From assembly GCA_054661495.1 (NCBI GenBank), contig BAAFSQ010000316.1, positions 1 to 10,917 on the forward strand: DNA of 10,917 bases, written 5' to 3'. The position numbers and the translations under genes were made by a program. This stretch comes from Zygophlyctis sp. KS116 (taxonomy: Eukaryota; Fungi; Chytridiomycota). The notes under the pieces were generated by a model. The model saw only the letters and a list, made by a program, of their open reading frames with translations, ran no database searches and had not been told where the DNA came from. Of this stretch, positions 958-10,917 are shown one piece after another (positions within the stretch are counted from its first letter, which is position 1; each line of letters starts with the position of its first letter).

Positions 958-1101
958 TTGAATTGATGATTTTATTACAATTTCTTATGAGATCATTTAC
1001 AATTCCTGATAATTGGCTAATCATGCTAAGAGATTAAGAAATCTCAGGAATAAAATATTTCGGACAATGTCGGACTTGCACTTAATAATTAAAGACTAAA
1101 A

Positions 1102-4075
1102 ATGGAGCGAAAGAGACAAAGGGAGTTTGAGGATGGGAACGAAGCTGTTCCTCCTACATCTCCAATTCAGGAGAATGAAGACATGACGCCATTTTCTGAA
1201 GATTCAGAAGAAAATATACAGGATGCGCACGCTCATGTTTTTGAGGATGATGAAGATGATGTTGAAAGCGAGGATTTGTTTGGAGATAATTTGGAGGGGT
1301 ATTTATTTTGATTAACAAGAGTGATTATAATGAAAATAATGCACTTGATCGGTACGATGTCGGGTCTGTAGATGGTGAAGAATATGGGATGATGGAGGCA
1401 GAAACGCGCCAATTGGTCGAAGCCAAGTTACGAAGGAGAGATCGGGAACAGGCTAGACTGCATGGTTTTCTTCCAGCTGCATTTTTAGATGAAGGTACGA
1501 TTTCTTGTATGGAATTTATAATAAGAGGAAGAAGAAGATGTTTCAATCAAGGTTAGAAGAAGAAGAAAGCATGATTTAGAGCCTGAATTTGAATTAGATG
1601 ATGAGGCTGTAATTAGTATTCTGTATCCCTAATATGTTTAGCCTGTTCTTGATTTAGAGGCTTTGAAAGATATTAAAGGACCAATTGATGAATATGTATC
1701 GAGGACTGGGCCGCGGGAGAGAATCAAGCAAGAATTTCATCGGTTCCTTACTTCCTATGTTAATGAGCACGGGGAATCCGTTTATGGTGAGCGAATCAAA
1801 ACAATGTGTGAAGGTAAAATCCAAAAATATCTAATCATAGCTAATGGAGAAAGTCTGGAAGTTGTATGGCAGCATCTCTACGAAAGTAGCGCTATTCTAG
1901 CGTTTCTAGTTTCTAATGCCCCTCAAGAGATCCTTAAAATATTTGATGTTGTAGCTTTGGAAGTTGTTCTTTCTGGTTTTGAAGAGTATTCGGGCATTAA
2001 GAATGAGATACATGTCCGTATTGCCGGAGTCCCGTCTGCTGATACTTTACGTGATTTAAGGTAATTTGGTCATCTCTTATTGCATTTAGGCAGCATCATC
2101 TTAATACTCTTGTTAAAGTGACGGGAGTAGTAACTAGGAGGACTGGTATATTCCCTCAACTTAAATATGTTAAATACGATTGCGTAAAATGCGGTGCTTT
2201 ATTGGGGCCTTATTATCAGGATACTTCAAAAGAAATCCGAATTGGAAATTGTCCTAATTGTCAATCTAAAGGACCTTTTAATGTCAACAGTGAGCAGACT
2301 ATCTATCGAAACTATCAAAGGTTAACTCTACAGGAAAGCCCCGGGTCTGTCCCTGCTGGACGAATCCCAAGGCACAAAGATGTGATTATGTTATGGGATT
2401 TGACTGATTGTGCCAGACCGGGCGAAGAAATTGTATTTTTTCCATTTGATTTTGTAGGAAGTAACCGGCATTTATCGAAACAACTTTGATGTATCACTTA
2501 ATATGAAAAATGGGTTTCCTGTTTTTGCCACTATAATTGAAGCGAATCATATTAGTAAGAAGCAAGATGAATTTGCTAGTTCTCGTCTTACTGAAGATGA
2601 TATTCGTGCTATCCGAGACATATCTAAAGATCCGCGTATCAGGCAACGGGTACGTAAATCAATTTTTAATAGAAATTAGATTATCAAAAGTATAGCGCCT
2701 TCTATATTTGGTCACGAAGATATTAAGACGGCTTTGGCTTTGGCGCTATTTGGAGGTGTTTTTAAAAATCCTCATGGAAAACATCGGCTGCGTGGTGATA
2801 TCAATGTTCTCATGATGGGAGATCCTGGAACAGCGAAATCTCAATTCTTAAAGTATTGTGAAAAGACAGCTTATCGTTCTGTATATACAACAGGTCAGGG
2901 GGCTTCTGCTGTTGGTTTAACGGCCTCTGTACATAAGGATCCCGTGACAAGAGAATGGACTTTGGAAGGTGGCGCTTTGGTAATGGCAGATAAAGGCGTG
3001 TGCTTGATTGACGAGTTTGATAAAATGAGTGATCAAGATCGGTAATAAGCTCTTTTTTATTTTCTAGAACATCTATCCACGAAGCCATGGAGCAGCAATC
3101 AATATCTATTTCCAAAGCAGGTATTGTTACATCCCTTCAGGCCCGATGTGCGGTTATCGCTGCTGCAAATCCTTTATTCGGAAAGTATAATCCCCAAGTT
3201 CCTTTTGCCCAGAATGTGGAATTGACAGAACCCATACTTTCAAGATTTGATATACTGTGTGTAGTTCAGGATTTGGCTGATCCTGTAATTGATGAACATC
3301 TTGCTCGTTTTGTTGTTGGAAGTCATATGAGGAGCCATCCCCTATTTGACCAGGAAGAAAGTGTAAATTTTTCTTTAATAACGTATATAGCCTTATGTTG
3401 AGGATATGAAGGATCCAGATGTATTCTCAATTTAACATTAATATTAGTTGATCGATCAAGATTTATTGCGCAAATACCTCATGTATGCTAGGGATCGTGT
3501 TTATCCCAAGATAAATAACATAGATCATGAAAAAATCGAAAAACTATATTCTGAACTTCGTCGTGAATCTATGGCAAGAATTTGATTTATTTAATCTATA
3601 GATTGGTGGTAGTATTCCAATCACTGTTAGATATCTGGAATCCATTATCAGAATGTCTGAGGCCTTTGCCAGAATGCATCTTCGTGATTTTGTCCGCCAA
3701 GATGATATTGATCAAGCCATAGCTGTCACCATTAAAAGTTTTATTTCAGCTCAAAAGTACTCTGTAAAAAAGACTCTATCAAAAGTCTTTGACAAGTACA
3801 TGTCTGTTGACCGTGATAGCTTCGAGTTACTTTTACATATCCTCTCAGAGATTGAAAAGGAGACCATACGATACAATTACTACCGCAGTGATTCAATTCC
3901 AGAGAAAATTGAATTGGACATGGAAGACTTTGAAACCAGAGTAAGTTTATCCCCCTAATATTAGGCTCGTGAACTATCAATTCATGATCTTGGACCATTT
4001 TACTCTTCCCAACTCTTTCGTCGTAGTTTTATTCTTGATGCCAAGAATCGTAAAATTCTAAATTCACGAAGATAA
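1102..4075 (+). CDS. MCM2: DNA replication licensing factor MCM2, about 880 aa, 13 exons
   Basis: Introns: 1299-1321, 1495-1525, 1609-1641, 1814-1840, 2061-2089, 2433-2457, 2650-2679, 3042-3067, 3363-3390, 3421-3447, 3574-3601 (GC-AG), 3941-3964. Spliced CDS is 2643 nt and stays in frame. Motifs: acidic N-terminus with histone-binding region [11 protein letters not shown]…LDRYD, Zn finger CVKC…[17 protein letters not shown], Walker [10 protein letters not shown], Walker B IDEFDKM, Arg finger [15 protein letters not shown]. Confidence 0.97.
3574..3601 (+). other. GC-AG spliceosomal intron (28 nt) in MCM2
   Basis: gcaagaatttgatttatttaatctatag must be removed to join LRRESM to [14 protein letters not shown]. 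No GT is available between the Met codon and the in-frame TGA. Confidence 0.85.
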
Positions 4076-4118: not shown

Positions 4119-4583
4119 TTACTTTTGAGCAGCCAGCAAAGCATTATAAACCTCTGATGAAATTCTAGCTTCCATTTTCTCTTCTGCCTTTGCACCTGAA
4201 TTGATGACACGATTAGCTTCATCTAAAGCCTTTCTAACAGACTCCATATCAACTTCATCCAATGTTACAGCCTCTACTGCATTAATATTTAAAGAAGAAT
4301 CTGGGTTCATAACTGCAAACCCACCAGATAAAAAGTATTTTTTAGAGGATCCACTAGATATAATTTCTAGAATCCCTGGTTTTAACTGCGACACTGAAGG
4401 AACATGATCAGCCAATATCCCCATATCCCCATCGGTAGAGGAGATATTGACTTGAGTTGCAGGGGATTTTTTAAGCAATGTCTTGACTTAGTCTAGAAAA
4501 CTTACAGCATGAGGAACAGTCAAATTAACCAGTAGCTTTTGACCAGAAGCCTCTGCAAATGTTCTTTTCCAAATTCTTTGCAT
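4119..4583 (-). CDS. ATP16: Mitochondrial F1-ATP synthase delta subunit, about 146 aa; exons 4583-4506, 4481-4119
   Basis: 24-nt intron at 4505-4482 (gtaagttttctagactaagtcaag, in-frame TAA). Protein MQRIWKRTFAEASGQKLLVNLTVPHATLLKKSPATQVNISSTDGDMGILADHVPSVSQLKPGILEII…KYFLSGGFAVMNPDSSLNINAVEA carries ATP synthase delta/epsilon family motifs and a short Arg-rich presequence. Confidence 0.95.
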
Positions 4584-4674
4584 TTTTGAGGTTTGCTCAA
4601 CGCGAAACTTTGCATTTTTTCTTTCGCGTCGACGCGTGGCATGGGCAAGGGGAAAGTAGAAAAAAAACTTGAAA
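4584..4674. promoter_or_regulatory. Putative bidirectional promoter shared by ATP16 and ATP2
   Basis: 91 bp between divergent ATGs. Contains inverted ACGCGAAA (4600-4607) / TTTCGCGT (4622-4629), a perfect 12-bp palindrome CGCGTCGACGCG (4625-4636) at the midpoint, and ACGCGT (4632-4637). T-tract on the left, A-tract on the right. Confidence 0.7.
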
Positions 4675-6314
<1,640 letters not shown>

Positions 6315-6619: not shown

Positions 6620-9600
6620 TCACTTGGCTCTTTTACTCCTTTTATTCTGTTTCCCATTATTATTCATTGGAGTGCCCATCTCCGAATTCCCCACTTCCGC
6701 AGGCTGATTACTAGCGGATGGTACTTCTCCTTTTTCTACTTGATCTGCTTCGGGAACTCTATATAGAGAGGACCTACGTCTGACCTGTATTACAACACCT
6801 ACTACGACCAAAGATATTAATAAAACCGCAGCAATAGCAATTCCTGCGATTGCGCCTACACCAATCTCTGAATTCGTTGATGGTGAATTGTTTGTTGGCG
6901 GAACAGTTGGTGAACCTGCAGATTGAGACGATGTACCCGTTGGCTGTGCAGAAGGTTGTAGAGTAGGTTGCAAAGTAGGCTGCAAAGTAGGCCTAATGGT
7001 AGCCTGCATAGTAGTCTTTAAGTTCACAGCTGTAGATTGAGACCCTGAAAGTTTTGAAGTTGCCACTGTAGATTGAGACCCTGAAAGTTTTGAAGTTGCC
7101 ACTGTAGATTGAGACCCTGAAAGTTTTGAAGATTCCACTGAAGAGTGAAATAAGGTTGATACAATTGAAGTTTGGAAATCCGAAAGTTTCAAAGAAGTGA
7201 CCGAAGACTGGATCGCTGGAGGAACAATGTTATTCTCCAACACAACGAAATCAGTTAAATGAGAGCACTGACAGGTTACGCTAAGGAAATCTCCAATTTC
7301 AGTAGTATTTAGTACTTTACATCCTTCAGTTGAGACAGATGCGCCGGTTAATGTTTCAGAAGAATCAGAATATTTGATCCAGGCGCATTCGGGAACAGTT
7401 CCTTTTGCTACTTCTATTGTAAATACAACTTCCATTGAAGTCGGACTGGTTTTGCCTAAAGTCGTCTCGTCCAAAAATGACATTTGGTTTATATCACTTA
7501 CCAATGAAATAGAAGAGTTCAGGTTTGAGAAAATGTTCGACTTTTTAGTACCGTAAATATAGGGAGGGCAGCCACTAGGTGCGAAGGATGAAGTGTCTAG
7601 CTCAGAAAATAAGAAAGAGCCGAATGTGGTTGCGTCCGCACTACCAATCCCAGCTGACATTGAAAAACTACCCTTGTCGGTAGAATATGCAACCTCACCG
7701 CAAACCGCACTGCCTAATGCACTCTGAGCTATGTCAAAAACAAAATTGTTCAAATTTTGAGAGAGAGTTTCGGCATTAGAAGAGGAACTGGAGGTTGAGC
7801 ATAAAAGATTGTCCAAAGAGCCCACTAAGCTGTCAAGACTCTGTGAAGTCAAGCTTGAGCCTTTCGCTTTATCCATGAGGTTAAACAAAGCGTTTGAAGC
7901 TGCAACTGAGTTAGAATCGGGCATTGAGCACTGGCTACCAATTGCGGAACTTAATTTTGATGCTATCAGAGCAGTCCCAGCATCGTCTATAGGCACCAAG
8001 CCGCTGTCTGTCAAAAAATCGAGTTCAGCTATAAAATCTTTTTGAAGATTAACAGCCCCAGCGTTAGATGATATATTTTCAAAGCCTATATCTGCAATTG
8101 CAGCCAATGTAGATATATAATTAGAAACACCCCCACTATTCAACAGCTCTTCCTTGCCTGAGCTAAGAAGTAATGTAGCTGAATCTAAGGCAACTTCAAG
8201 AGAAGTGGATCTAGTTACATTTACTGTAAATTGGGGAATGCTTGAAGCATTGGGAACGCCCCCAGAGGCGTCAGTGAGAGATACTTTAAAATCGTAGATA
8301 CCCTCTGAAAGCTTTAAATCAATATTCGGTTCGATAGAATTTAATGAAGCCGTTCGGTAGTTAACCTCGTCTGATTTTTTTAACAGTACGCTGTAAAATA
8401 GAGGATAAGAAAGAGAGTCTGTTTCCCAACCAGAACAAGATACTCTTAAATCAGAAAACTCAGCAACAGATGTGTTACTGGAAGTACAAATCCCATTTGA
8501 TGGTCGATTTAGTACTTTAAATTGAACTTCACTATAATTCGTTTGAACGGATCCATCAATAATCCGTACCTGTATGCAGTAATTGGTTCCAGCTCTTAGC
8601 GCATTTGTGGAAAATTTAAGAACATTATATATTGGGAAAACCGCAAAGTTTTCTCCAACAGAAAAGTCAATTAATTCTGCAACATCACCAGACGAGCAAT
8701 TAGAAACAGAGCGCCAATTATATTTTATATTTTTTGGCGATAGAACAGATGTGATATCAATATTTGCCGAAATTTGAAACGAACGATCTTCTGTTGAAGT
8801 CAGCAGCTTTGATGGTATCACAGTGAAAAGTGGCAACGAATCATTCTGAATGATGATGGATACATTTTTGGATACACCCATAGCACCAGTATCTTGATTT
8901 ATCACGGTTAGTCCTAAATTGTAAATTCCAGTTTCCAGGCTTCGAGTCAGATTCAAACTGCAGGTATTCAGTTCTAGTGGGTTTGAAGTTTGTAAATTTA
9001 TGCAAGCACCTAAAGTTGATGTAGTGCAAACCCAATTGCAAGTGAAGTTATAGAAAGTTTTCGGACGGTATGATAAGTCAATAATTTGGGGTAGCATAGT
9101 AAGGGGCTGTAAAGCTCCAACTGTACGATCAGAACCGGCCGACACTTGAATTTGATCAAGTGCAGTAGTGAAATTATATGATGCCGAAAAATTTGCATAG
9201 GCACTTGTTGCCGAAACATTCACCAAATATATTTGATTAGGCAGAAGTTTGTAGGGGGGTATATGAAGTGAAGAAACATTGCTACTTAGATCTGAATCGT
9301 CAGACGTTTTTCCATAAAACTTTATGCTAAAACTAAATTCACCAGGCAATGAACATTTAAGATCTGAAGTTCTATTAAGGCCAACTTGAGCTGTTATTAT
9401 ATTTCTATAATAAGTATCCACATCGCCAGAAGGAATGACTACATCAAGAAGAAGTTCACTGGTTTGACAATAGATTACTGGCGGAACAGTTGGAGAACCT
9501 GTAGATTGAGAAGATGTACCCGTTAGTTGTAATGTATGTTGGAAAGTAAGTTTCGAAGTAGGCTGTGCAGTATGTTGCAGAGAAGTCTTTAGGGTCACAG

Positions 9601-10917
9601 CTGTAGATTGAGTCGCTACTTGCAAAGAGGGCAGTGCAGGAGGTTGCAAAGTAGGCTGTGCAGTAGGTTGTGCAGTAGGTTGCAAGGTAGGTTGCAAAGA
9701 AGTCTTTAAGCTCATAGCTGTAAATTGTGCTACTTGCAAAGTAGGCTGTGTTAGTGTCACAGCTGTAGATTGAGTCGCTACTCGCAAAGAGGGCAGTGCA
9801 GGAGGTTGCAAAGTAGGCAGTGCAGTAGGTTGTGCCGTAGGTTGCAAAGTAGCCTGATTAGCAGTCAAAGCGGTAGATCGAGACGCTGGAAGTTTTGTAG
9901 TTTCCACTGTAGATGTAGATTTAGCAGCAGAATCAGTGACAACAGCGCTTTCTGCAGTATAACAGACTTCAGTAACAGCACTGTCGTGATCACATAGGGA
10001 ACCTCCATTAAAGGCATCCGATGAATAATAAGAAGTGATTCTTGAAGACCCGTCACAAGCTCCAATTTCGGTGCTTGTAATTCCGCAGTTAGCACAAAGA
10101 TCAGTTGTAAACAGGGTGCATCCAGATCCACCATTAACATCGTCTGCAATAAAGTAGCTAGTTACACGGAGTGATCCATCACAAGATCCAACAGTACTTG
10201 AACGGAGGGATCCATAACAAGGTCCAACAGTTGCAGTATGTTGTGCCGTAGGTTGAAAAGTAGCCTGATTAGCAGTCAAAGCGGTAGATCGAGACGCTGT
10301 TTCAACAGAAGTGACAACAGTGCTTTCTGCAAGGGAAGTTTCATCAGAAGTAGATTCAACAGAAGTGACAACAGTGCTTCCTGCAAAAGAAGTTTCATCA
10401 GCAGGAGATCCAACAGAAGTGAAAACAGTGCTATCTGCAATAAATGTTTCATCAGCAGTAGTTTCAACAGAAGTGACAACAGTGCTTTCTGCAAGGGAAG
10501 TTTCATCAGAAGTAGTTTCAACAGAAGTGACAACAGTGCTTTCTGCAAGAGAAGTTTCATCAGCAGTAGATTCCACAAAAGTGACAACAGTGCTTTCTGC
10601 AAAAGAAGTTTCATCAGCAGGAGATCCAACAGAAGTGAAAACAGTGCTTTCTGCAAGAGTAGTTTCATCAGCAGGAGATCCAACAGAAGTGAAAACAGTG
10701 CTTTCTGCAAGAGTAGTTTCTTCAGTAGTAGATTCCACAAAAGCGCCAACAGTGCTTTCTGAAAGAGTAGTTTCATCAGCAATAGTTTCAACAGTGCTTT
10801 CTGAAAGCGTAGTTTCTTCAGCAGTAGATTCCACAGAAGTGACAACAGTGCTTTCTGCAAGGGAAGTTTCATCAGAAGTAGTTTCAACAGAAGTGACAAC
10901 AGTGCTTTCTGCAAGAG
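6620..10917 (-). CDS. Large single-pass cell-surface protein with mucin-like repeats, REJ-like module and GAIN/GPS motif (polycystin-1-like ectodomain); 5' end beyond the window
   Basis: Frame is open from 10915 to the TGA at 6620-6622 (1431 aa in the window); the track's GTG start at 10834 is internal. REJ-like motif NRPSNGICTSS…RVSCSGWETDSLSYPLFYS, GPS motif PECAW…STEGCKVLN…VTCQCSHLTDFVVL, hydrophobic helix followed by RRR. Confidence 0.85.
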   Translation of the reverse strand, partial: LAESTVVTSVETTSDETSLAESTVVTSVESTAEETTLSESTVETIADETTLSESTVGAFVESTTEETTLAESTVFTSVGSPADETTLAESTVFTSVGSPADETSFAESTVVTFVESTADETSLAESTVVTSVETTSDETSLAESTVVTSVETTADETFIADSTVFTSVGSPADETSFAGSTVVTSVESTSDETSLAESTVVTSVETASRSTALTANQATFQPTAQHTATVGPCYGSLRSSTVGSCDGSLRVTSYFIADDVNGGSGCTLFTTDLCANCGITSTEIGACDGSSRITSYYSSDAFNGGSLCDHDSAVTEVCYTAESAVVTDSAAKSTSTVETTKLPASRSTALTANQATLQPTAQPTALPTLQPPALPSLRVATQSTAVTLTQPTLQVAQFTAMSLKTSLQPTLQPTAQPTAQPTLQPPALPSLQVATQSTAVTLKTSLQHTAQPTSKLTFQHTLQLTGTSSQSTGSPTVPPVIYCQTSELLLDVVIPSGDVDTYYRNIITAQVGLNRTSDLKCSLPGEFSFSIKFYGKTSDDSDLSSNVSSLHIPPYKLLPNQIYLVNVSATSAYANFSASYNFTTALDQIQVSAGSDRTVGALQPLTMLPQIIDLSYRPKTFYNFTCNWVCTTSTLGACINLQTSNPLELNTCSLNLTRSLETGIYNLGLTVINQDTGAMGVSKNVSIIIQNDSLPLFTVIPSKLLTSTEDRSFQISANIDITSVLSPKNIKYNWRSVSNCSSGDVAELIDFSVGENFAVFPIYNVLKFSTNALRAGTNYCIQVRIIDGSVQTNYSEVQFKVLNRPSNGICTSSNTSVAEFSDLRVSCSGWETDSLSYPLFYSVLLKKSDEVNYRTASLNSIEPNIDLKLSEGIYDFKVSLTDASGGVPNASSIPQFTVNVTRSTSLEVALDSATLLLSSGKEELLNSGGVSNYISTLAAIADIGFENISSNAGAVNLQKDFIAELDFLTDSGLVPIDDAGTALIASKLSSAIGSQCSMPDSNSVAASNALFNLMDKAKGSSLTSQSLDSLVGSLDNLLCSTSSSSSNAETLSQNLNNFVFDIAQSALGSAVCGEVAYSTDKGSFSMSAGIGSADATTFGSFLFSELDTSSFAPSGCPPYIYGTKKSNIFSNLNSSISLVSDINQMSFLDETTLGKTSPTSMEVVFTIEVAKGTVPECAWIKYSDSSETLTGASVSTEGCKVLNTTEIGDFLSVTCQCSHLTDFVVLENNIVPPAIQSSVTSLKLSDFQTSIVSTLFHSSVESSKLSGSQSTVATSKLSGSQSTVATSKLSGSQSTAVNLKTTMQATIRPTLQPTLQPTLQPSAQPTGTSSQSAGSPTVPPTNNSPSTNSEIGVGAIAGIAIAAVLLISLVVVGVVIQVRRRSSLYRVPEADQVEKGEVPSASNQPAEVGNSEMGTPMNNNGKQNKRSKRAK
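6782..6865 (-). other. Single transmembrane helix of the large ORF
   Basis: IGVGAIAGIAIAAVLLISLVVVGVVIQV followed by RRR (positive-inside rule) and a hydrophilic tail of about 53 aa. Confidence 0.9.
7030..7131 (-). repeat. 36-nt coding tandem repeat, about 2.8 copies (SKLSGSQSTVAT)
   Basis: tgtagattgagaccctgaaagttttgaag recurs at 7031, 7067 and 7103. Confidence 0.95.
7238..7393 (-). other. GPS motif (C-terminal part of a GAIN domain), predicted autocleavage HL|T at 7256/7255
   Basis: C-x-W…G-C…C-x-C-S-H-L-T-D-F matches the GPS consensus, with four Cys and catalytic His and Thr. The second conserved Trp before GC is replaced by Val. Confidence 0.85.
8205..9475 (-). other. REJ/PKD-like beta-sandwich module
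   Basis: IPPYKLLPNQIYLVNVSA, VSAGSDRTV, FTCNWVC, YNWRSV, LRAGTNYCIQVRI and NRPSNGIC…SCSGWETD…PLFYS resemble REJ-family motifs. Boundaries are approximate. Confidence 0.7.
9530..9860 (-). repeat. QPT(A/L) 12-nt low-complexity coding repeats with a longer internal duplication (LQPPALPSL[R/Q]VATQSTAVTL x2)
   Basis: Repeated gtaggttg/gtaggctg units; gtcacagctgtagattgagtcgctact occurs near 9594 and near 9755. Confidence 0.85.
9959..10225 (-). other. Cys-rich module, about two degenerate TSP1/spondin-like repeats
   Basis: Two copies of G-x-C-D-G-S-x-R-x-T-S-Y-x5-6-NGGS-x-C…C plus a truncated third (GPCYGSLR); 8 Cys in total. Confidence 0.5.
10300..10917 (-). repeat. 54-nt coding tandem repeat (18 aa, e.g. 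TTSDETSLAESTVVTSVE), at least 11 copies, continues past the window edge
   Basis: acagtgc anchor at 10317, 10371, 10425, 10479, 10533, 10587, 10641, 10695, 10749, 10791 (one 42-nt unit), 10845 and 10899. Confidence 0.97.

Follow-up and report, generated by a model that had tools for sequence, protein, structure and literature searches.

A single-pass REJ-GAIN surface protein in a chytrid genome, a candidate self-cleaving tether

The window analysed here, a stretch of 10,917 nucleotides that is the entire contig C316 of a 12.7 Mb assembly in 1175 contigs, encodes a GAIN-domain, REJ-type protein that is neither polycystin-1 proper nor an adhesion GPCR. The gene belongs to a chytrid REJ-GAIN family that is real and, apparently, undescribed in Fungi. 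Judged from the predicted fold and catalytic residues, the odds lean slightly towards a self-cleaving, sheddable surface tether and away from a receptor.

Gene structure

The minus-strand frame running from 10915 to 6620 is open over 1431 codons and closes with a stop codon at 6620-6622 (Table 1). Its 5' end lies beyond the contig edge, which cuts the frame within a 54-bp tandem repeat, so that the start codon and signal sequence are not visible, and a search for the continuation in the assembly and in metagenomes found none. A repeat match on contig C232 was rejected as the missing 5' part, since C232 holds a separate, complete gene. All the elements listed in the first-pass annotation (Ser/Thr/Glu repeats, Cys module, QPT stalk, REJ, helices, GPS, stalk, TM and tail) are found in that order, and the core of the gene bears 17 N-sequons.

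On the 3' side, the stop codon is followed after about 305 nt by the end of the convergent ATP synthase beta gene, and this gap contains no long open frame and none able to add TM helices. Splicing to further TM exons was ruled out, as the downstream region has neither room nor frame for them and the relatives end after one TM. The earlier reading of one TM helix, with no PLAT domain or further TM helices, is upheld by the 53-aa tail, the stop codon and the convergent gene. The PLAT domain that follows TM1 in PKD1 and its 11-TM channel-like region are thus lacking; nor does a 7TM_2 domain come right after the GPS, as in adhesion GPCRs, since Pfam gave no 7TM match and the one TM helix lies past a 130-aa stalk.

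Table 1. Features of the REJ-GAIN gene, its contig and related loci (window coordinates unless a contig or locus is given)
Feature	Position	Strand	Basis or remark
ORF, 1431 aa, 5'-incomplete	6620..10915	-	runs off contig end
Ser/Thr/Glu mucin-like tandem repeat, 18-aa (54-bp) unit, 11.6 copies	10298..10915	-	repeat analysis; 76-87% DNA identity to C232 stalk
Cys module, aa 233-318, two ~38-aa units	9962..10219	-	89% DNA identity to C84 array units
Gln/Pro/Thr (QPT) stalk, 12-bp repeats, partly duplicated in post-GPS stalk	9479..9961	-	PF04886, below cut-off
REJ module, four Ig/FnIII-like beta-sandwich domains	8213..9478	-	PF02010, 38.3 bits; model pLDDT 89; FnIII matches
GAIN subdomain A, helical	7706..8212	-	predicted structure, Foldseek
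GAIN subdomain B, beta-sandwich ending in GPS motif (C1177, C1199, C1215, C1217)	7235..7705	-	predicted structure, alignment
H-L|T predicted autoproteolysis site (H1219, L1220, T1221)	7253..7261	-	aligned to latrophilin-3 HL|T; cleavage inferred
Ser/Thr/Gln/Pro stalk between GAIN and membrane, 36-bp repeat	6866..7234	-	130 aa from cleavage Thr to TM
Single transmembrane helix, aa 1351-1378, then RRR	6782..6865	-	hydropathy
Cytoplasmic tail, 53 aa, basic end, stop codon	6620..6781	-	without the PY motifs common to many relatives
ATP synthase F1 delta and beta genes	4119-6314		divergent pair; introns 24-33 nt
MCM2 gene with many micro-introns	1100-4075		preceded by a LYR-family gene
C38 tandem parent genes	C38:15035-21689, 22001-28591		signal anchor, EGF, GT4-like, GT2, dibasic site, Ig-like region, REJ, GAIN, one TM
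Type 1 (microbial) rhodopsin exon, PF01036	L010:1322-1975	-	~1 kb from C38a
C96 paralogue	L013:6347-9564		core 86-92% identical
C84 protein, secreted, >1300 aa	L034:3493-7437		NHL propeller, ephrin-receptor-like Cys repeats, ~15 Cys units, Ser/Thr stalk
C232 protein, secreted, 410 aa	L026:1316-2548		Cys repeats, GPI-like end, no Pfam match, shares Ser/Thr/Glu repeat
PLAT loci	C2:88646-88951, C85:35370-35717, C421:1235-1480

The REJ and GAIN domains

In the genome profile search REJ (PF02010) was matched above its cut-off at profile positions 277-420, and this stood from the Pfam check proposed at first pass; the GPS half did not, as PF01825 reached 18.7 bits on the protein, under its cut-off of 22.5, and hmmscan on the same protein did not report REJ. 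The low GPS score is explained by the replacement of both canonical tryptophans (Ile1180 and Val1194), the second of which is kept by many other chytrid family members. Among 42 aligned relatives, REJ matched in 27 and GPS in 21, and the profile built from them matches adhesion-GPCR GAIN structures with E values down to 1.6e-12.

The AlphaFold2 model of the 760-aa core (pLDDT 89, pTM 0.87) consists of four beta-sandwich domains, a helical bundle and a beta-sandwich, and aligns with an animal REJ+GPS cluster with a TM-score of 0.65 over 563 residues. Together with the Pfam match, this supports the REJ similarity first read from the letters. Foldseek retrieved generic Ig arrays only with the entire 760-aa model, and GAIN emerged once it was modelled alone (the last 331 residues of the core, pLDDT 94). 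All ten matches at E<1e-3 were then GAIN structures, with an E value of 1.7e-9 to BAI3, onto which 249 residues superpose with Z 19.3 and rmsd 3.4. The predicted helical A and beta-sandwich B subdomains, about 320 aa in all, place this region among the GAIN domains, and the fold anticipated upstream of the GPS motif is present in the model. The axonemal doublet chains PDB 8glv_AE (Chlamydomonas), 9fqr_Hn (bovine sperm) and 9y6s_9f (Leishmania) also align with the GAIN model (Z 12-14, ~230 residues), and a GAIN-like fold in an intracellular flagellar protein is possible on these modelled matches.

In the GPS motif the four cysteines and the H-L-T residues, followed by F1223, align with latrophilin-3. 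The equivalents of H-L-T perform cleavage in latrophilin-1, where the T838A variant misfolds (PMC3321182); a T-to-A mutant alone would therefore be a poor control. The two replaced tryptophans are the main doubt that the sequence itself casts on cleavage.

A chytrid-wide family

A HMMER search of 1.84 billion representatives returned 56 matches (best E 5.5e-153). With the 760-aa core as query, a word-seeded search recovered no relatives, which is due to its length window and to sequence divergence. The named members, drawn from 30 clusters looked up and one targeted search, come from Spizellomyces, Powellomyces, Geranomyces, Thoreauomyces, Chytriomyces, Physocladia, Siphonaria, Dinochytrium, Nowakowskiella, Lobulomyces, Clydaea and Lobulomycetales MAGs. 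No non-chytrid is among them, many of the 56 matches carrying no name. By its core homology and single C-terminal TM helix the window gene belongs to this REJ-GAIN-1TM family, and Spizellomyces SPPG_05701, Chytriomyces KAJ3246689 and Physocladia KAJ3108281 are true members with the same layout (sequence E 1e-13 to 1e-31). The annotation of the chytrid relatives is automatic only (in UniProt some are 'GAIN-B domain-containing').

One clear TM helix follows GAIN in the paralogues and in the 37 relatives with complete ends. Chytridiales tails contain additional hydrophobic stretches, which are low-complexity runs of Ala/Val/Pro ahead of the PY motif. Between GAIN and the TM helix lie 3 to 124 aa, the window gene having the longest interval (130 aa if counted from T1221). 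The N-termini of the family vary, with GT4-like and GT2 domains in ten proteins and in upstream exons at two more loci, a plain signal peptide in the Spizellomyces member and an LRR and NHL N-terminus in P0063.

All ten GT-bearing proteins have a KR/RR-D/E site after GT2, and 20 of 38 sequences have a KR/RR site at the REJ/GAIN junction, compared with 7% of random windows. Of 37 tails, 17 contain an L/PPxY motif, where shuffles give 2.2 (maximum 7), the relatives being non-independent samples. KR/RR is an established Kex2 motif and PY an established Rsp5/Nedd4 motif, and the dibasic sites and PY tails of the family would fit Kex2 processing and Rsp5/Nedd4 recruitment. The visible part of the window protein has neither of the two dibasic sites, after GT2 or at the REJ/GAIN junction, nor a PY-motif tail.

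H-L-T/S is kept in 33 of the 37 relatives that reach the tail, and its retention across several chytrid orders at about 20% overall identity implies selection for cleavage. Members from Lobulomycetales and Dinochytrium (P0011, P0012, P0014, P0018, P0058 and P0036) keep REJ-GAIN and have lost the GPS cysteines and/or H-L-T. These are predicted to be natural non-cleaving variants, and cleavage would thus be dispensable in part of the family.

Paralogues and mosaic origin

The genome has five copies of the gene family. Two of them, C38a and C38b, lie in tandem, and since the same pair is found next to the same LMBR1 neighbour in another organism (L037), C38 is the old locus. The long exons of both encode GT2, a middle region, REJ, GAIN and the TM helix, and in an exon-by-exon comparison those further upstream correspond to the N-terminal portion of an annotated Chytriomyces protein, which begins with a signal anchor, EGF, GT4-like and GT2 in this order; C38a has a candidate signal anchor. 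The C38 proteins, anchored at both ends and with two predicted processing sites, are probably the more interesting members of the family. Over 670 nt (L010:4663-5332 and L011:1403-2072) the two genes share 99.6% identity in their GT2 regions, and the remainder is highly diverged, which is attributable to either recent gene conversion or assembly collapse. The rhodopsin exon close to C38a possibly belongs to a rhodopsin-guanylyl cyclase.

In the FastTree phylogeny the window gene groups with C96 and then with C38b with full support, the window gene and C96 being nested inside the C38b clade. Its conserved core begins at the first REJ domain, at a junction that is identical in C96 and C785, upstream of which the N-termini of these two copies are unrelated. 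The middle region of C38b, about 600 aa between GT2 and REJ, has no counterpart in the window gene. The core is under purifying selection, with dN/dS values of 0.18-0.26 against C96 and 0.11-0.13 against C38b. The C96 copy has a short Cys-rich N-terminus with no evident signal peptide; it carries a 10-nt frameshifting deletion near L013:8620, at the GAIN A/B boundary, and is probably a pseudogene.

Modules of the N-terminal half match other surface genes of the assembly. The Cys module is 89% identical in DNA to an array of about 15 repeats of a 38-aa Cys unit in the NHL-propeller surface protein on C84, and the 54-bp repeat reaches 87% DNA identity to the stalk of the GPI-type protein on C232. 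These high identities indicate a recent mosaic, and the window gene is a recent duplicate of the C38b glycosyltransferase-REJ-GAIN gene with its N-terminal half swapped for modules copied from other surface genes (85-89% DNA identity); the C84 gene may be donor or recipient of the Cys module. GT4-like, GT2, EGF and signal anchor are absent from the visible 1431 aa, whose 5' end is missing, and the assembly has two GT2 copies only.

The Cys module matched neither Pfam, TSP1 included, nor PDB sequences, and Atlas features point to the TSP1 clan at 0.75-0.80; a thrombospondin/spondin-like repeat is a weak lead on this basis. Its attraction lies in the TSP1-repeat proteins that Phytophthora spores secrete during attachment, according to Robold and Hardham (2005) as related in PMC3869178.

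Host, sample support and expression

The host of the gene is identified from its sequence context as a freshwater chytrid. Contig C316 also bears the genes for MCM2 and for ATP synthase beta and delta. Their introns are very short, and RNA contigs show two of them removed by splicing (33 nt at 4898-4930, 26 nt near 5719). A phosphate transporter on another contig has chytrids as its best named matches (Gorgonomyces 56%, Spizellomyces 53%). With all named homologues from chytrids, the fungal host supposed at first pass could be narrowed to this group. Animal contamination was ruled out by the micro-intron MCM2 and ATP synthase genes on the contig and by the same homologues.

Host DNA is present in lake and estuary metagenomes. 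Exact-match contigs from a different freshwater study cover 6632-9500, and the same independent sample holds the gene together with its 89% paralogue, with 40 of 40 variant letters equal to the paralogue on C96. An assembly artefact was ruled out by these contigs. RNA support for the gene consists of one exact 169-nt contig at 8524-8689 from an estuary metatranscriptome, for which DNA carry-over is possible; no transcript contig of the gene was seen in two RNA libraries, where the ATP synthase contigs had low depth.

Discussion

Cleavage and shedding emerge as the most likely mechanism from the predicted fold, the catalytic residues and the retention of H-L-T/S in the family. The protein would enter the secretory pathway through its missing N-terminus and would be glycosylated there, the stalks by O-mannosylation, as is general in fungi, and the core by N-glycosylation. 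GAIN would fold in the ER, where His1219 would activate Thr1221 for cutting of the L1220-T1221 bond, and the last beta-strand would stay inserted and keep the two halves joined non-covalently. A 211-aa C-terminal piece would anchor the complex on its stalk and the N-terminal piece (REJ rod, stalks, Cys module, mucin repeats and a further tip) would project outward until pulling or some other destabilisation released it. As a 7TM or channel domain is absent and 130 residues lie between the freed strand and the membrane, the outcome would be ectodomain release and not tethered-agonist signalling. The GPS stands directly before TM1 in adhesion GPCRs and PKD1 (PMC3321182), and its distance from the TM helix here makes tethered-agonist action unlikely. 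Single-TM membrane tethering favours GAIN cleavage (PMC12488864), and in bacteria MAIN domains cut themselves and, with no signalling domain present, can set surface proteins free (10.64898/2026.05.12.724683); counting against release, separation of the latrophilin fragments is predicted to be difficult (PMC3321182). It is plausible that the protein helps the cell to attach to a host or substrate or to detach from it.

The doubts about cleavage feed a rather unlikely alternative, an uncleaved or permanently joined structural glycoprotein of the surface in which GAIN is a rigid spacer or a folding checkpoint and shedding does not occur. Neither GPS tryptophan is present here, an entire chytrid clade has kept the domain though H-L-T is lost, and some animal GAIN domains are uncleaved, the latrophilin halves staying together (PMC3321182); the persistence of H-L-T/S in most of so diverged a family, through several orders, argues the other way. 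It is quite unlikely that the protein signals in trans as a co-receptor or mechanosensor through a multi-pass partner, like the Drosophila Cirl 1TM isoform or a split flagellar polycystin. REJ-GAIN is the polycystin-1 ectodomain core, chytrids are flagellated, the one-TM SpREJ1 triggers the acrosome reaction (PMC1934368) and Cirl 1TM pairs with the 7TM form (PMC13197933). However, the PKD_channel profile (PF08016) found no match in the assembly, a weak negative given that micro-introns and incompleteness limit the search, the three PLAT matches sit on other contigs, the post-GPS stalk is highly variable in length across the family and the tail is short, with no conserved motif. The mechanosensor suggested at first pass is accordingly weak, having no signalling bundle, a 130-aa stretch from GPS to membrane and a short tail.

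The missing 5' part invites a very unlikely reading in which it still bears GT4-like and GT2, which would make the gene the third to encode a Golgi enzyme-anchor polyprotein, here with a mucin region inserted. The GT part is found in the parent C38b and in most close relatives, and a third copy could be collapsed in the assembly given the near-identity of the C38 GT2 regions; against this stand the two assembled GT2 copies, the unmatched stretch of C38b between GT2 and REJ, and the sister copies C96 and C785, which start the core at the same junction after unrelated N-termini. A decaying duplicate with no function is likewise highly improbable: the sister C96 is frameshifted and has no evident signal peptide, and in the window gene itself the start codon is out of view and RNA support is thin, but 1431 codons stay open through repeat arrays, dN/dS is about 0.2 and identical contigs exist in an independent sample.

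The self-cleaving tether can also be set in a wider scheme that we hold to be unlikely, an undescribed enzyme-plus-anchor polyprotein system of chytrids. A signal-anchored GT4-like and GT2 glycosyltransferase would be made in one chain with the tether, glycosylate it or build a coat or adhesive glycan, and be set free by Kex2-type processing; GAIN would part under force, Rsp5 would clear the stub via the PY motif, and the window gene would be a freed, module-shuffled offshoot serving host attachment and release.

Among known systems, the layout comes closest to single-pass sea-urchin proteins. The premise that REJ-GPS proteins carry 11 TM helices and PLAT does not hold for SpREJ1, SpREJ8 and SpREJ9, which have one TM and GPS and no PLAT, SpREJ9 with a Ser-rich N-terminal region (PMC1934368). 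The window protein shares with them the order of REJ, GPS and one TM without an 11-TM channel region, with SpREJ9 the Ser-rich N-terminal region, and with SpREJ1, a heavily glycosylated receptor on the surface of a flagellated cell, a further likeness of setting. It differs in its fungal host, in the 130-aa stalk between GPS and TM, in having no visible C-type lectin domain and in a parent fused to glycosyltransferases. The suggestion of a possibly undescribed protein therefore holds for the fungal family, for which no literature description was found, and not for the REJ-GPS-1TM layout, already known from these proteins. As in polycystin-1, REJ Ig/FnIII modules directly precede a GAIN domain with H-L|T; unlike it, the protein has no PLAT, 11-TM/channel-like region or coiled coil, its GPS is not juxtamembrane, and a PKD2-type channel was not found in the assembly (a weak negative). 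A complete GAIN-A plus GAIN-B (Z 17-21) and variable adhesion modules with mucin stalks at the N-terminus recall adhesion GPCRs (BAI3/ADGRB3, latrophilin, GPR110), from which it differs in both GPS tryptophans and in lacking a 7TM domain, so that a tethered agonist would have no intramolecular target. In bacterial and archaeal MAIN proteins a GAIN-like autoproteolytic domain lies between a surface anchor and an enzymatic or adhesive cargo, with proposed release of the cargo (10.64898/2026.05.12.724683). MAIN is prokaryotic, anchored in the envelope and matches GAIN-B only, whereas this eukaryotic gene has GAIN-A, REJ, disulfides and a TM anchor and is not one of them; MAIN is nevertheless the best functional analogue, and the window protein most likely works like a MAIN tether. 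Many chytrid relatives have GT4-like and GT2, dibasic sites and PY tails, which the visible window protein does not.

GAIN and REJ are, to our knowledge, usually regarded as missing from Fungi. Fungal adhesion-type GPCRs have been described as lacking N-terminal domains (PMC3251606). Outside animals, GAIN has been recorded in Dictyostelium and Tetrahymena (PMC3321182), and a REJ+GPS protein in the brown alga Ectocarpus (PMC4700764). In the literature covered, which is incomplete, no description of REJ or GAIN proteins in chytrids or fungi was found. What is new is the fungal family, the glycosyltransferase fusion, the dibasic sites, the PY-motif tails and the module swapping. The chytrid-wide family carries the polycystin-1 ectodomain core into Fungi, which would fit its retention since the opisthokont ancestor, with later loss in yeasts and moulds, and a eukaryotic GAIN without any signalling domain offers a direct test of the proposed origin of GAIN as a release device. 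As far as we know, the molecules by which chytrid zoospores adhere to surfaces and depart from them are poorly known; Spizellomyces punctatus is transformable and has a family member, SPPG_05701, which opens the question to experiment.
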